From the sequence record MN794232.1: DNA of 64,000 nt, one strand, 5' to 3'. The notes below the pieces were generated by a model. The model was not told where the DNA came from, ran no database searches, and worked only from the letters and a program-made list of their open reading frames with translations. The number at the start of each line of letters is the position of its first letter. Position 1 is the stretch's first letter. Below, piece after piece: positions 51,819 to 61,020 of this stretch. Made by a program: the position numbers and the translations under genes.

Positions 51819-52149
51819 AAGAGCCTTTCGGCTCTTTTAATTTGCAGAAACAAAAAAACCTGCTCAAGGCAGGTTTAGATGTGCAATACACAGACATTCG
51901 AGAATTGTTTTATCGTCTTTCCTTAAATCTCAATTGACTATCTCGATGTTTCTCATCAAGAGAATACCCATGATTCGGCATGAGACCTATTTCGTTTTAC
52001 AGTACGAACACCGTCTTAATGGTCATTTCCTACCACGAGAATGCGACAGGCTCACGTCATCACTGAGAAAGCAGCTAGTGCGCCTCATTACTATTAAAGT
52101 TTGCTTCTTTGATTAGTAATAGTTGCTGTACAATGTCTTATTGCGAATT

Positions 52150-52238
52150 TGGCGGAGATACTGGGAATCGAACCCAGAGAACGCTATTAACGTCCGACAC
52201 CTTAGCAGGGTGCTGTCATACCTTTAGACCATATCTCC
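52150..52238 (-). tRNA. tRNA-Ser(GCT)
   Basis: cloverleaf, long variable arm, CCA. Confidence 0.93.
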
Positions 52239-53628: not shown

Positions 53629-54053
53629 ATTGTTAATCTGAAGCATCAAACAAATCACGTATAGCACGTAGATTTGTAAGCTCTACTGTAAGTGTTCTAA
53701 TAAAGAACGGGTTGGTCTCTTTTGCGAGACGTTTTTCAACATCACGAATTTTATCGCGAATGTTGCCCTTGCTTAGTGTAAAGTAGTCATGCTTCTTTCT
53801 CTTCGTTTGAGGTTAAAATCAGGTTAACGTGCTCATTCACTTCTTGCTCGATTTGCCACTGTTCGTAGACATACTCAGCGTATAAAAGTGTTTCGTACAT
53901 GTTCACCCTTTTTGAATGAATTTAAGCTTACGTTTAAGCTTGCCACGAGATTTATGTCGCTTACACAGTTTAGCACCGTGATAGCTATGATATTGATAAA
54001 AGCTAGTTAGCTTCTTATACAATGATTTCATGCATACCTCATGTTTTTGAATT

Positions 54054-54129
54054 TGGTGGAGACACCGATACTCGAAATCGGATCTAATGGCTTATGAGAC
54101 CATTGCTCTACCACTTGAGCTACATCTCC
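54054..54129 (-). tRNA. tRNA-Met(CAT), probably elongator
   Basis: cloverleaf, CCA. Confidence 0.85.
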
Positions 54130-54155
54130 AAAATCAGTAATTAACTCATTTAATC

Positions 54156-54475
54156 GCACACGGGCTGACACCATATATTTATGGTCTGAGCGAGGAACCA
54201 CATAGTGGGTACTGTCACCTCATCTTAGTTTTGATTGTTTTACATGACGATAACTAGAAACGTTCATAATAATGCCACGCGATACTTCCTGTATCACGGC
54301 TAACTGAGTTAGCAAACTTGCCTTGCGGCTGTAGTGTCGTTTCCGACGAATTAAGTACAGACAATACCGAAGTGTTTTTTCGTCTTTTGCATTAATCGGA
54401 GTTGACTAGCTTATTGATTCTCAACAAGCAAATATCGTCTGTTTCAGCGACGCGCCTATCTGACTATTTCTAGGC
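54156..54475 (-). ncRNA. candidate large structured ncRNA (about 320 nt)
   Basis: no ORF; at least 8 hairpins incl. C(UUCG)G, GAAA and GCAA tetraloops. Confidence 0.6.
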
Positions 54476-54576
54476 AGAGAGAATCTTTCCTTTCAAGCTG
54501 CGCCGAAGCACTACCCAGGTTAAGATCATCACTTCTTTTAAGTAATTTTCAATTGTTTGCTGTATATTGTCTCTCT
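54476..54576 (-). ncRNA. CAGCAA-module RNA G
   Basis: AGAGAGA/TCTCTCT closing stem, ATACAGCAAACAAT. Confidence 0.6.
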
Positions 54577-54634
54577 AATCATACTCATGATATGCCGAAG
54601 CAAAGTATCATTCGCCGCATGATAGAGCTTAATT

Positions 54635-54710
54635 TGGCATCCCCAGAGGGATTTGAACCCACAACCCACGACTTAGAAGGTCGTTGCTCTTCCAATTGAG
54701 CTATGAGGAC
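54635..54710 (-). tRNA. tRNA-Arg(TCT)
   Basis: cloverleaf, CCA. Confidence 0.93.
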
Positions 54711-54786
54711 ATTAAAAGAATTCGATCCATGAGCTATTGCGCAGACGATGGTAGTAAAGAGACTCTGCACTCATGTGATCGAAATT

Positions 54787-54861
54787 TGGTGGACACGCAG
54801 GGAGTCGAACCCTATCCTCCTCATTGCAAGTGAGGCGCTTTCCCAATTAAGCTAACGGCCC
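54787..54861 (-). tRNA. tRNA-Ala(TGC), imperfect acceptor stem
   Basis: G3-U70 present; stem pairs only with a bulge. Confidence 0.75.
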
Positions 54862-55181: not shown

Positions 55182-55187
55182 GTTACT

Positions 55188-55300
55188 GAGTGTTATTACT
55201 TGCGTCGTCCAGACCAGAGATACCAACTCTGAAAGGGAATCGAACCCCAAACATTTCTTTTCGTAAGAAGAATATTAGTAATTGTTTGCTGAAAACACTC
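55188..55300 (-). ncRNA. circularly permuted tRNA mimic (YrlA-like) RNA F
   Basis: terminal stem, CAGCAAACA bulge, inner stem, variable-like hairpin, T arm, capped acceptor hairpin, D-like hairpin. Confidence 0.75.
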
Positions 55301-55309
55301 TTCGGTATT

Positions 55310-56000: not shown

Positions 56001-56144
56001 TTTTTGAGTTACCTATTTAAGTTTAAAAGATAACTCAGTGATAAAGTGTTTAGGCGCCACATTCGTAAGTGAATGACTCTATTACTACTTAGCAATTACA
56101 TTCAAGCGTTACCAAGAATCATGCCACGTAGCTTTAAATTAAAC

Positions 56145-56202
56145 AGCAATCCTTTTCTCTTTTTGCAAATAAAAGTTTTGTATTGTTTGCTGAAAGATTG
56201 CT
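56145..56202 (-). ncRNA. minimal CAGCAA-module RNA H
   Basis: AGCAATC/GATTGCT stem, TTTCAGCAAACAAT. Confidence 0.55.
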
Positions 56203-56208
56203 TAATTC

Positions 56209-56710: not shown

Positions 56711-56796
56711 TGGTGGAGCGTAGAGGAATCGAACCTCTCTTCCCATTACGGGACACGGATTTACAGTCCGCTGCCGCACCTTGCGGCTTACGCTCC
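56711..56796 (-). tRNA. tRNA-Tyr(GTA)
   Basis: cloverleaf, variable arm, CCA. Confidence 0.93.
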
Positions 56797-56802
56797 AGAA
56801 TT

Positions 56803-56876: not shown

Positions 56877-56939
56877 ATTAAATTGTATATTGATTTGCAA
56901 GCTAATCAACTCGCAAAGCGATACACAATGTATCTAATT

Positions 56940-57262: not shown

Positions 57263-57297
57263 ATTGTTTGTTTTTGAACGTTACTTCGTTCTTCTTC

Positions 57298-57418
57298 ATT
57301 GTACATGATGTTTATATCGTTGTAAACATCTTTTTTGAAAAACTTTTCATTAACTTTTGAATGATATTTCGCTTTTCTCTATTGTACATGATGTTTATAT
57401 CGTTGTAAACATCTTTTT
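57298..57418 (-). repeat. exact 38-bp direct repeat = tandem promoters
   Basis: 57298-57335 and 57381-57418; TTTACA-17-TACAAT with 8-bp inverted repeat. Confidence 0.85.
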
Positions 57419-58574: not shown

Positions 58575-58690
58575 TGGTAGTCGGGGCTGGATTCGAACCA
58601 GCGACCACGTGCTTAACAGGCAATTGAAGGAGTGCTGGAGCGATACTTGACAGTATCATTCTTCGTGCTCTACCACTGAGCTACCCGACT
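58575..58690 (-). ncRNA. tRNA-Asn-like RNA A with 41-nt insertion in anticodon stem
   Basis: removing the insert gives a perfect 75-nt tRNA-Asn(GTT) with CCA. Confidence 0.85.
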
Positions 58691-60240: not shown

Positions 60241-60360
60241 TGGTGGAGAGTGATGGATTTGAACCACCGACCAAAAGATTTACCAGTTAAGGTTTGCAGC
60301 ATGAATGCTTGTCAGTATTCTTTAACATTCTTTTGCTCTACCAGACTGAGCTAACTCTCC
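60241..60360 (-). ncRNA. tRNA-like RNA B with 50-nt structured anticodon loop
   Basis: canonical acceptor, D and T arms and CCA; AAAGA/TCTTT stem encloses module. Confidence 0.85.
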
Positions 60361-60476: not shown

Positions 60477-60487
60477 GTAAAAACATA

Positions 60488-60613
60488 TAGTTGCGGGTGC
60501 AGGATTCGAACCTACATCACGATCTTATGAATGATATGCGAAATTGATTGCCGTACAGATTCTTATCAGAATCAGTTTTGTGCTACGTGTGCTACCACTT
60601 ACACCAACCCGCA
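60488..60613 (-). ncRNA. tRNA-like RNA C with module insertion
   Basis: D and T arms canonical; 15-bp terminal stem 60484-60621; ends ACTA, not CCA. Confidence 0.8.
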
Positions 60614-60882
60614 ACTATATGCTTTCGGGATGCTTACGCAGGTTCTTCTCTACGTAAGCACAGTTCCTCAATGTATATTTTGCCTTAGCCAATCACAACA
60701 CAACCCAACCCAATATCGTGCGCTTTAATTACGGGATTGATGACCCGTTCGCATGTGATTAGCGTAAAAGTATGATTACGCACCTTTTCTTCTTCAATGT
60801 CCAAGGCAAAGAGGACTATGAATACTAGTGCGAGAAGATATACAATCAAATTGCTCACCTCGCTTAATAAGTGAGAGTACAT

Positions 60883-61005
60883 TGGTCGAGTGTAACGGAA
60901 TCGAACCGTTCCCACGATCTCCCTATGATATGCGTAAATTGGTTGCTGAATATAATCATGTCTGATTACAGTATGCTACGTGTGCTGCCACTACACCAAC
61001 ACTCG
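60883..61005 (-). ncRNA. tRNA-like RNA D with module insertion
   Basis: paralog of C; CCA present; 21-bp perfect inverted repeat 60873-60893/60999-61019. Confidence 0.82.
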
Positions 61006-61020
61006 ACCAATGTACTCTCG

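Follow-up and report, generated by a model that had tools for sequence, protein, structure and literature searches.

In bacteriophage T4, the genes rnaD (species 2) and rnaC (species 1) are found, in that order, directly after tRNA-Arg, and their transcripts presumably owe their release to tRNA-processing enzymes. RNA C and RNA D are stable RNAs that have been confirmed by Northern blotting and whose role is unknown (PMC3014915; PMC9697503). GOLLD and ROOL, which are encoded by phages and prophages and are often located near tRNA islands, likewise contain many covarying helices and are of unknown function (bioRxiv 10.1101/2024.12.08.627333).

We have identified a previously undescribed family of folded non-coding RNA that is present as two diverged copies, 2.2 kb apart, in the tRNA cluster of KVP40-type Vibrio phages. 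Like T4 rnaC and rnaD, its members are non-tRNA RNAs of a phage tRNA region, carried on the tRNA strand as two units per genome, and copy 1 directly follows tRNA-Arg(UCU) on that strand, as rnaD and rnaC do. The T4 RNAs, however, are 119 and 139 nt long and arranged in tandem, whereas the Vibrio phage copies measure 214 and 247 nt and are paralogs of each other; moreover, T4 rnaC has at its end a tRNA-like T arm, which neither Vibrio phage copy possesses. Since no homology in sequence or structure was found, we regard T4 RNA C and RNA D as analogues, the nearest in kind, and not as members of the same family. With GOLLD and ROOL the new RNAs share a phage origin and a position beside tRNA genes, a context that is insufficient for membership, and the core of ~215-250 nt, restricted to one Vibrio phage clade, compares with ~600-800 nt or more for GOLLD and ROOL. 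There is also some resemblance to the tRNAs among which the RNA is embedded, in that its 7-bp terminal helix, P1, abuts P6 along the 3' strand with 1 nt between them, in a manner comparable to the stack of the acceptor and T arms. Unlike a tRNA, it has no encoded CCA after P1, its P6 loop comprises 25 nt compared with the 7 nt of a T loop, and it is three times the size.

The window, i.e., the whole stretch of 64,000 nucleotides that was analysed, comes from Vibrio phage VH1_2019 (MN794232), with which it shares 100% identity, a KVP40-type, T4-like myovirus. It contains a cluster of ~30 tRNA genes, located entirely on the minus strand according to ARAGORN and Rfam, most of which are only a few nt apart. 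Degenerate tRNAs are also present in the cluster, for example at 54790-54861. An ORF-poor gap of 505 nt on the minus strand (54130-54634) separates tRNA-Arg(UCU) from tRNA-Met, and the order tRNA-Arg, gap, tRNA-Met is the same in KVP40, QD01, R11Z, VH7D, VS1, nt-1, D482, D484, F86 and 1.081.O. The features of both copies are collected in Table 1.

Table 1. Features of the two RNA copies and their neighbours in the window (coordinates are those of the window; features are listed in the RNA sense)
Feature	Coordinates	Strand	Description and basis
tRNA-Arg(UCU)	54635..54710	-	ARAGORN and Rfam; directly upstream of copy 1 in the RNA sense
Variable 5' leader	54573..54634	-	Local hairpins differing by lineage; poorly conserved in alignments A1 and A2
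Copy 1, conserved core	54359..54572	-	214 nt; several helices within a P1-closed domain; conserved in every KVP40-type lineage (alignments A1, A2)
P1	54566..54572 with 54359-54365	-	7 bp, long-range; AGACAAU with AUUGUCU, ~200 nt apart
J1	54552..54562	-	Single-stranded motif CAGCAAACAAU (CAGCAAAC), just 3' of the P1 5' strand; kept in both paralogs
5' domain of copy 1 (P1a, P2, P2a, P2b)	54483..54546	-	RNAalifold and pair counts
P1a hairpin	54540-54546 with 54528-54534	-	
P2	54522-54526 with 54483-54487	-	
P2a	54517-54519 with 54489-54491	-	Varies: CCU/AGG, CGU/ACG, CUC/GAG
P2b hairpin	54495-54516	-	UUCG loop; insertions in R11Z/VH7D and the D482 group
P3 hairpin	54460..54477	-	7 bp, CUGCCUA-GAAA-UAGUCAG, GNRA loop; 7/7 pairs change on both sides (A8)
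P4 hairpin	54436..54452	-	CGUC/GACG, loop containing CYGAAW; 4/4 pairs covary, 98% of cells paired
P5 hairpin	54409..54429	-	GCUUGUUGA/UCAAUAAGC; 6/7 pairs covary, e.g. UUCACU/AGUGAA in 1.081.O
Junction, then P6 and its loop	54367..54408	-	Junction UAGUCAAC (unpaired, AUAGUCAAC)
P6	54396-54399 with 54367-54370	-	4 bp, CCGA with UCGG; 100% paired; CG/GC/GU and CG/AU/UA pair types
Accessory module C	54195..54358	-	Hairpins GUCG-GAAA-CGAC, GCC-GCAA-GGC, GCUAAC/GUUAGC and GAUAC/GUAUC, and an unstructured tail
Module D	54130..54194	-	Hairpin ACCAUA/UAUGGU, then a conserved tail reaching tRNA-Met
tRNA-Met(CAU)	54054..54129	-	ARAGORN and Rfam; directly downstream of copy 1
tRNA-Ser(GCU)	52150..52238	-	ARAGORN and Rfam; the cluster ends with this tRNA, and 11 nt separate it from copy 2 downstream
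Copy 2	51892..52138	-	247 nt; core paralog, diverged; found by nhmmer (HMM of copy 1 only, E = 1e-13)
Intrinsic terminator	51856..51876	-	AAACCUGC-CUUGA-GCAGGUUU and a U run; terminator scan; closes the tRNA operon right after copy 2

An earlier note, made from the letters of this DNA, had flagged 54156-54475, inside the gap, as a candidate minus-strand RNA of about 320 nt, structured and free of ORFs, next to a phage tRNA cluster. Its central proposal is borne out by helices that covary across orthologs and paralog and by conservation at the level of tRNA-Arg, and the flagged interval is indeed free of long ORFs, the minus strand holding only TTG-started frames of 31 and 36 aa. The limits of the proposed unit were less accurate; the strand was correct and the 3' half of the core lies inside the interval, but the conserved unit runs from 54572 to 54359 and begins 97 nt upstream of the flagged start. 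In its 3' half the core is about as well conserved as the neighbouring tRNA-Arg, with 84% versus 83% identity in D482. The leader that separates tRNA-Arg from the core ranges from 53 to 349 nt across lineages, and that of nt-1 is longer and contains an inserted ORF.

The accessory ~200 nt at 54156-54358 is missing wholly or partly in F86, 1.081.O, nt-1 and VS1. Only the KVP40 group and nt-1 carry module C in full; D482 and D484 have part of it, F86 a residue and 1.081.O none. Module D is present in the KVP40 group, D482/D484 and F86 and absent from nt-1, VS1 and 1.081.O. The hairpins of both modules vary little across relatives: in module C there is one compensatory change (C3, GCUAAC/GUUAGC, in R11Z) together with one swap between GCAA and GAAA loops, and in module D a single compensatory UA>CG change in ACCAUA/UAUGGU of D482.

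The helices of the core were obtained with RNAalifold and by inspection of the alignments. In the shared architecture, the 7-bp helix P1 joins the ends of a domain of ~150-270 nt and is followed by the unpaired CAGCAA and a variable 5' domain, after which the elements of the 3' domain occur in a conserved order, namely P3, AUAGG, P4, P5, AUAGUCAA and P6 with its 25-nt loop. P1 is fully complementary in 18 of the 18 copies examined, which comprise four sequence variants; it is 100% paired in an alignment of 13 sequences, with compensatory double changes at three positions (AU>GC in F86, CG>UA in 1.081.O and AU>UA in every copy 2). The loop of P3 is GAAA, but GUGA in F86, and the AUAGG that follows this hairpin is unpaired. 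The A-rich loop of P6 (UUAAUGCAAAAGACGAAAAAACACU) is nearly invariant, and across both paralogs and all lineages this loop and AGUCAA vary little or not at all.

Eight of the ten hairpins listed in the earlier note agree with this fold and with the relatives. Its GTC..GAAA..GAC corresponds to P4 and its TTGTTGA/TCAATAA to P5, while GTCG-GAAA-CGAC, GCC-GCAA-GGC, GCTAAC/GTTAGC, GATAC/GTATC, CCAC/GTGG and ACCATA/TATGGT are real local hairpins. The other two had been mis-assigned. The pairing GCCTA/TAGGC is not maintained in relatives, where P3 is conserved instead and AUAGG is left unpaired, and the letters read as an AC-TTCG-GT tetraloop contain UCGG, the 3' strand of P6, which pairs with CCGA 26 nt upstream and shows CG/GU/GC and CG/AU/UA covariation. 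Three further candidate pairings showed no covariation and were dropped: a local AGAC/GUCU hairpin around the same UUCG, which is broken in F86, a phage that keeps the long-range P1; a pairing of the J1 letters AGCAAA with UUUGCU upstream of P5, lost in F86 and 1.081.O; and a pairing of UACAG with CUGUA at the 3' end, lost in F86.

The predicted folding energy depends on the strand. The minus strand of the flagged interval folds better than dinucleotide shuffles (z = -2.99, with 0 of 100 shuffles as good), and z is -2.23 for the minus strand of the whole inter-tRNA gap compared with -0.47 for the plus strand; for the core of copy 1 the corresponding values are -2.74 and -0.39. By energy alone, copy 2 is not better than its shuffles (z = -0.96).

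The helices are maintained by compensatory substitutions across orthologs and paralog. In a plain MAFFT alignment of seven copy-1 orthologs (A3), the 46 pairs of the structure are paired in 91.9% of cells and 18 of them undergo double changes, where the effective number of independent lineages behind this and the following counts is only 4-6 per paralog. None of 500 shuffles of A3 was as good, and when the partners were slid, 33-45% of cells were paired with 1-4 double-change pairs. A plain MAFFT alignment of both paralogs (A5, 13 sequences), restricted to P1 and P6, gave 11 pairs that are 99.3% paired and include five double-change pairs; 0 of 500 shuffles equalled it in pairing or in covariation score, and 3 of 500 did so in the double-change count. 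The third alignment (A8, 15 sequences) covers the 3' domain and was made with R1, a covariance model of that domain only, built from copy-1 sequences with no contribution from the copy-2 rows. Its 22 pairs are 91.7% paired with 19 double-change pairs, counts that are inflated because A8 was fitted to the model structure, whereas those of A3 and A5 are free of this bias. None of 500 shuffles of A8 was as good either, and slid partners yielded 29-43% pairing and 3-7 double-change pairs. With a core conserved in all lineages and 18-19 double-change pairs in A3 and A8, the RNA shows the conservation and covariation whose lack the earlier note had named as refuting it.

Copy 2 was recovered not only by the HMM (Table 1) but also by R1, which scores it at 75.4 bits (E = 4e-13) in the window and finds it in five lineages with E-values of 1e-13 to 7e-8. 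It is always situated between tRNA-Ser(GCU) and the terminator, as seen in KVP40, R11Z, nt-1, D482, F86 and, in a reduced form, 1.081.O, and a GC hairpin with a T run stands behind it in every lineage. Copy 2 retains P1 (as AGACAUU/AAUGUCU), J1, AUAGG, AGUCAA, P6 and the P6 loop. Its helix sequences differ from those of copy 1, and it has a 5' domain of its own (alignments A4 and A5), in which the hairpin GCUG-CUUUCU-CAGU shows U-A>C-G covariation and a second hairpin with the loop AGGAAAUG has, by inspection, the stems UGGU/ACCA, GAAGU/ACUUC and GAGU/ACUC. In 1.081.O, copy 2 is a natural minimal form of 149 nt without P3-P5 and the long P6 loop, which shows that those parts are dispensable in some copies.

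Each of the six KVP40-type lineages sampled has both copies, and blastn with the two query regions found matches to both in 50 GenBank records of Vibrio phages. So far, the family is confined to KVP40-type Vibrio phages, i.e., Schizotequatrovirus, Mylasvirus and the D482 and F86 groups. Scanning IMG/VR for the conserved DNA pattern returned only KVP40 and VH7D themselves. The same kind of scan gave 56 chance matches in JGI metagenomes, none with the flanking motifs, and 27 in GTDB genomes, none of which passed the covariance model. Full-text literature searches, whose reach did not extend to the KVP40 genome paper, found no description of this phage RNA.

The earlier note had seen nothing linking the RNA to GOLLD, ROOL, RNase P or group I introns and had suggested an Rfam cmscan; at gathering thresholds that search of the whole window returned tRNAs only, and none of these four families appeared even at E<=10. 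At this relaxed threshold, the only matches beyond tRNAs in or beside the gap (53900-54800) were weak, sub-threshold ones to Plastid-ycf2, rli30 and GlsR7. Eight loci from relatives gave scattered sub-threshold matches, mostly over tRNA genes and over the terminator that follows copy 2, and none of the families reappeared on the core from one lineage to another. The covariance models of GOLLD and ROOL had no match at E<=10 in 53900-54800 or in the eight relative loci, and RNase P RNA, group I and II introns, tmRNA, 6S RNA and known ribozymes had none at that threshold in the gap or in either copy across six lineages. Neither ARAGORN nor the Rfam tRNA models matched within 54130-54634 or 51892-52138.

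Traces of the copy 1 region were found in public RNA libraries. In two seawater RNA-seq runs, a 701-nt contig from a relative, ~88% alike, extends over 54163-54847 and spans a degenerate tRNA-Ala, tRNA-Arg, the core and module C; these data are unstranded, and DNA carry-over is possible. One of the two runs contains an additional 151-nt contig on tRNA-Met and module D, with the rest of the 3-kb stretch uncovered. A third RNA library, likewise unstranded and possibly subject to DNA carry-over, provided a 151-nt contig from a relative on 54354-54496, in the 3' domain. A run of unspecified type covers the 3-kb stretch more evenly. As evidence for expression of the copy 1 region, the contigs from RNA libraries are suggestive only.

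We favour the reading, to which we assign a probability of about 0.6, that tRNA-processing nucleases cut each copy out of the operon transcript as a stable RNA, which acts in trans. Both copies are on the tRNA strand and would be transcribed as part of the polycistronic tRNA precursor, with no need for a promoter of their own. The 5' side would be set by the 3'-trailer cut after tRNA-Arg or tRNA-Ser, and the 3' side by RNase P at tRNA-Met in the case of copy 1 or by the terminator in the case of copy 2. The P1 clamp and the P1/P6 stack could then give a compact, exonuclease-resistant RNA that persists in the manner of T4 RNA C and RNA D, and the invariant unpaired blocks may serve as tertiary contacts, as a surface for a protein or RNA partner from tRNA or translation metabolism, or as both. 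The unpaired CAGCAA, AUAGG, AGUCAA and 25-nt loop match the tRNAs in their degree of conservation; this feature, together with the retention of two paralogs, suggests a specific partner or tertiary fold and argues for a trans-acting RNA over a spacer. It is only from the conservation of these unpaired nucleotides that we infer a probable action in trans.

The main rival to this reading is that the RNA is a cis-acting element of the tRNA operon, i.e., a processing guide, an insulator or a 3' stabiliser, which positions the cuts of RNase E or RNase P or blocks 3' exonucleases and is then degraded. It owes this rank to the signature of helix plus CAGCAA, which is also found in other tRNA trailers: CAGCAA with an adjoining 7-bp helix recurs after tRNA-Gln and tRNA-Trp of the same cluster, as would fit a shared processing signal. 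Both copies, furthermore, lie directly 3' of a tRNA, copy 2 being the last element before the terminator. However, ~200 nt with six covarying helices and a 25-nt invariant loop in two paralogs exceed what a spacer or guide needs, and most tRNAs of the cluster manage without such an element, so that we consider a purely cis-acting role unlikely. It is improbable that the RNA is a true homolog of T4 rnaD/rnaC, inherited with tRNA-Arg(UCU) from a T4-like ancestor and diverged beyond recognition. The position after tRNA-Arg is the same, and the tRNA-Arg genes of T-even phages are 83-85% identical to that of VH1_2019 over 59 nt, yet blastn of T4 rnaD and rnaC against the window found only T-arm-like matches to tRNAs and none to either RNA copy, and R1 had no match in rnaC or rnaD with its filters at default or off. 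The tRNA-like T arm of T4 rnaC also stands against such descent, since no tRNA model matches in the gap at E<=10. Finally, 44RR2.8t, TG1, S-RIM14 and GAP32, which have a similar tRNA-Arg, gave no match to the RNA, and in three of these four phages, the intermediate T4-type phages 44RR2.8t, TG1 and S-RIM14, the tRNA-Arg is followed by ORFs.

Maturation of tRNA 3' ends has been proposed as the role of small ribozymes beside phage tRNAs, and the position of both copies immediately 3' of tRNAs and the invariant unpaired nucleotides in a compact junction could fit an RNA that processes the 3' end of the preceding tRNA by cleaving itself or by some other catalysis. Given that no Rfam ribozyme matches at E<=10 in six lineages, and that the variable leader after tRNA-Arg is unfit for a precise 3'-end cutter, we find this very improbable. 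We give scarcely any credence to the view that the region is non-functional, as a decayed remnant of a tRNA or mobile element, or that it consists of small protein-coding genes. Degenerate tRNAs do occur in the cluster and hypothetical proteins are annotated over the region in some GenBank records, but those annotations are inconsistent between records and overlap tRNAs, no tRNA model matches, and there is no ORF of at least 30 aa within the core on either strand, a 43-aa GTG-started ORF (54538-54669) overlapping only its 5' edge. Indels between lineages are not multiples of three, compensatory changes preserve the helices, and the two paralogs are kept in every lineage.

The family adds a well-delimited case, supported by covariation, to the non-tRNA RNAs of phage tRNA operons. 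Years or decades after they became known, T4 RNA C and RNA D, GOLLD and ROOL still have no assigned function. In the present case, the phages are lytic and cultivable and their hosts (V. parahaemolyticus, V. natriegens and V. alginolyticus) are tractable; the two paralogs and the natural minimal variants show which parts are indispensable, and the nearly invariant 25-nt loop offers a handle for pull-downs and mutagenesis. In addition, the finding corrects the annotation of ~50 GenBank genomes, in which this stretch has no annotation at all or is marked with small, spurious 'hypothetical proteins'.

A broader proposal, which we rate as distinctly unlikely, is that the two paralogs and the smaller elements made of a 7-bp helix plus CAGCAA together form a phage-specific RNA system acting on tRNA metabolism, for example a scaffold or decoy that shields or sequesters phage tRNAs against host defences that target tRNAs, or an RNA of a new kind that is catalytic or self-assembling. 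If true, such a system would for the first time offer a way into the function of the non-tRNA RNAs of T4-type tRNA operons, a puzzle now 50 years old. The smaller elements lie in the trailers of tRNA-Gln and tRNA-Trp, and the motif CAGCAAMYAWT has five matches in the window compared with 0.44 expected, all of them on the minus strand and within the tRNA cluster.

The motif CAGCAAMYAWT occurs five times in the window, where 0.44 matches would be expected across both strands, and all five lie on the strand from which the tRNA cluster is transcribed. Its occurrence 18 nt 3' of tRNA-Gln is retained in the related Vibrio phages KVP40, R11Z and 1.081.O, and in nt-1 the motif has the same surrounding sequence, with tRNA-Gln itself falling outside the nt-1 stretch compared. 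CAGCAAMYAWT may serve as a common processing or recognition signal. The positions of these matches and of the other features of the cluster are collected in the table.

Features of the tRNA cluster of Vibrio phage VH1_2019 and insertions in the related phage nt-1
Feature	Coordinates	Strand	Basis
CAGCAAMYAWT matches	52118-52128, 54552-54562, 55281-55291, 56182-56192, 60938-60948	all (-)	motif count
Small structured element, tRNA-Gln/tRNA-Thr spacer	55182-55309	(-)	conserved; hairpin covariation
Small element directly 3' of tRNA-Trp	56130-56208	(-)	helix and CAGCAA-type signature
tRNA-like gene with insertion	58578-58690	(-)	Rfam tRNA model, end-to-end, 49.8 bits
tRNA-like gene with insertion	60244-60360	(-)	Rfam tRNA model, end-to-end, 55.8 bits
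tRNA-like gene with insertion, no encoded CCA	about 60487-60617	(-)	by eye
tRNA-like gene with insertion	about 60882-61007	(-)	by eye
GATAC-N(5-6)-GTATC hairpins	54281-54295, 56920-56934, 58642-58657		pattern count
Apparently degenerate tRNA	54790-54861	(-)	Rfam alone, 45.7 bits
tRNA gene scored as tRNA-Sec or tRNA-Tyr	56714-56797	(-)	Rfam, ARAGORN
83-bp tandem duplication, copies 89% identical	57272-57418	(-)	sequence repeat and promoter match
HNH endonuclease gene; 78-aa ORF	nt-1 locus L002, 534-977 and 1199-1435		cluster insertions

The element in the tRNA-Gln/tRNA-Thr spacer, for which no tRNA was called, is closed by the helix GAGUGU/ACACUC, after which comes UUCAGCAAAC. It contains two hairpins, one resembling a T arm (GGGGUUCGAUUCCC) and one resembling a D arm (CAGAG-UUGGUAU-CUCUG). 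Covariation was found in both hairpins when the spacer was aligned across R11Z, VS1, D482 and 1.081.O (alignment A10). The same helix-plus-motif signature is borne by the element after tRNA-Trp, in which a 7-bp helix (AGCAAUC/GAUUGCU) encloses UUUCAGCAAACAAU.

Four tRNA-like genes have the anticodon-arm region interrupted by an insertion of 40-55 nt, and none of them was called by ARAGORN in the window. Acceptor stem, D arm and T arm are retained in all four, and CCA is encoded in three. The insertions have GAAGAAUG, ACUGNCAAG, CAGCAACCAAU and GCAUAUCAU in common. These genes may represent tRNAs that contain an intron, or else long-armed tRNA-like RNAs. Hairpins of the form GATAC-N(5-6)-GTATC number three in the window against 0.32 expected, all within the tRNA cluster; one is sited in the accessory hairpin block 3' of the first structured RNA core (module C), another in the insertion of the 49.8-bit tRNA-like gene.

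Rfam and ARAGORN disagree on two individual tRNA genes. The degenerate gene has a KVP40 counterpart annotated as 'tRNA-Pseudo-1', and at its place ARAGORN calls tRNA-Ala(UGC) in nt-1, QD01, D482 and 1.081.O; it is apparently a tRNA-Ala that is degenerate in VH1 and KVP40. The other scores 49.2 bits with the Rfam tRNA-Sec model, slightly over the threshold of 47, and is read by ARAGORN as a tRNA-Tyr(GUA) whose variable arm is long; it is probably a tRNA-Tyr.

Directly upstream of the tRNA-Leu/Phe/Lys block, both copies of the tandem duplication bear a sigma-70-like promoter match (TTTACA-17-TACAAT), and this is a likely promoter of the sub-operon holding both structured RNA copies. Among the relatives, nt-1 has its 78-aa ORF inserted between tRNA-Arg and the structured RNA core. 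Short 'hypothetical proteins' are annotated over the RNA and tRNAs in several GenBank records (QD01, PVA8, D482), and these look like gene-caller artefacts.
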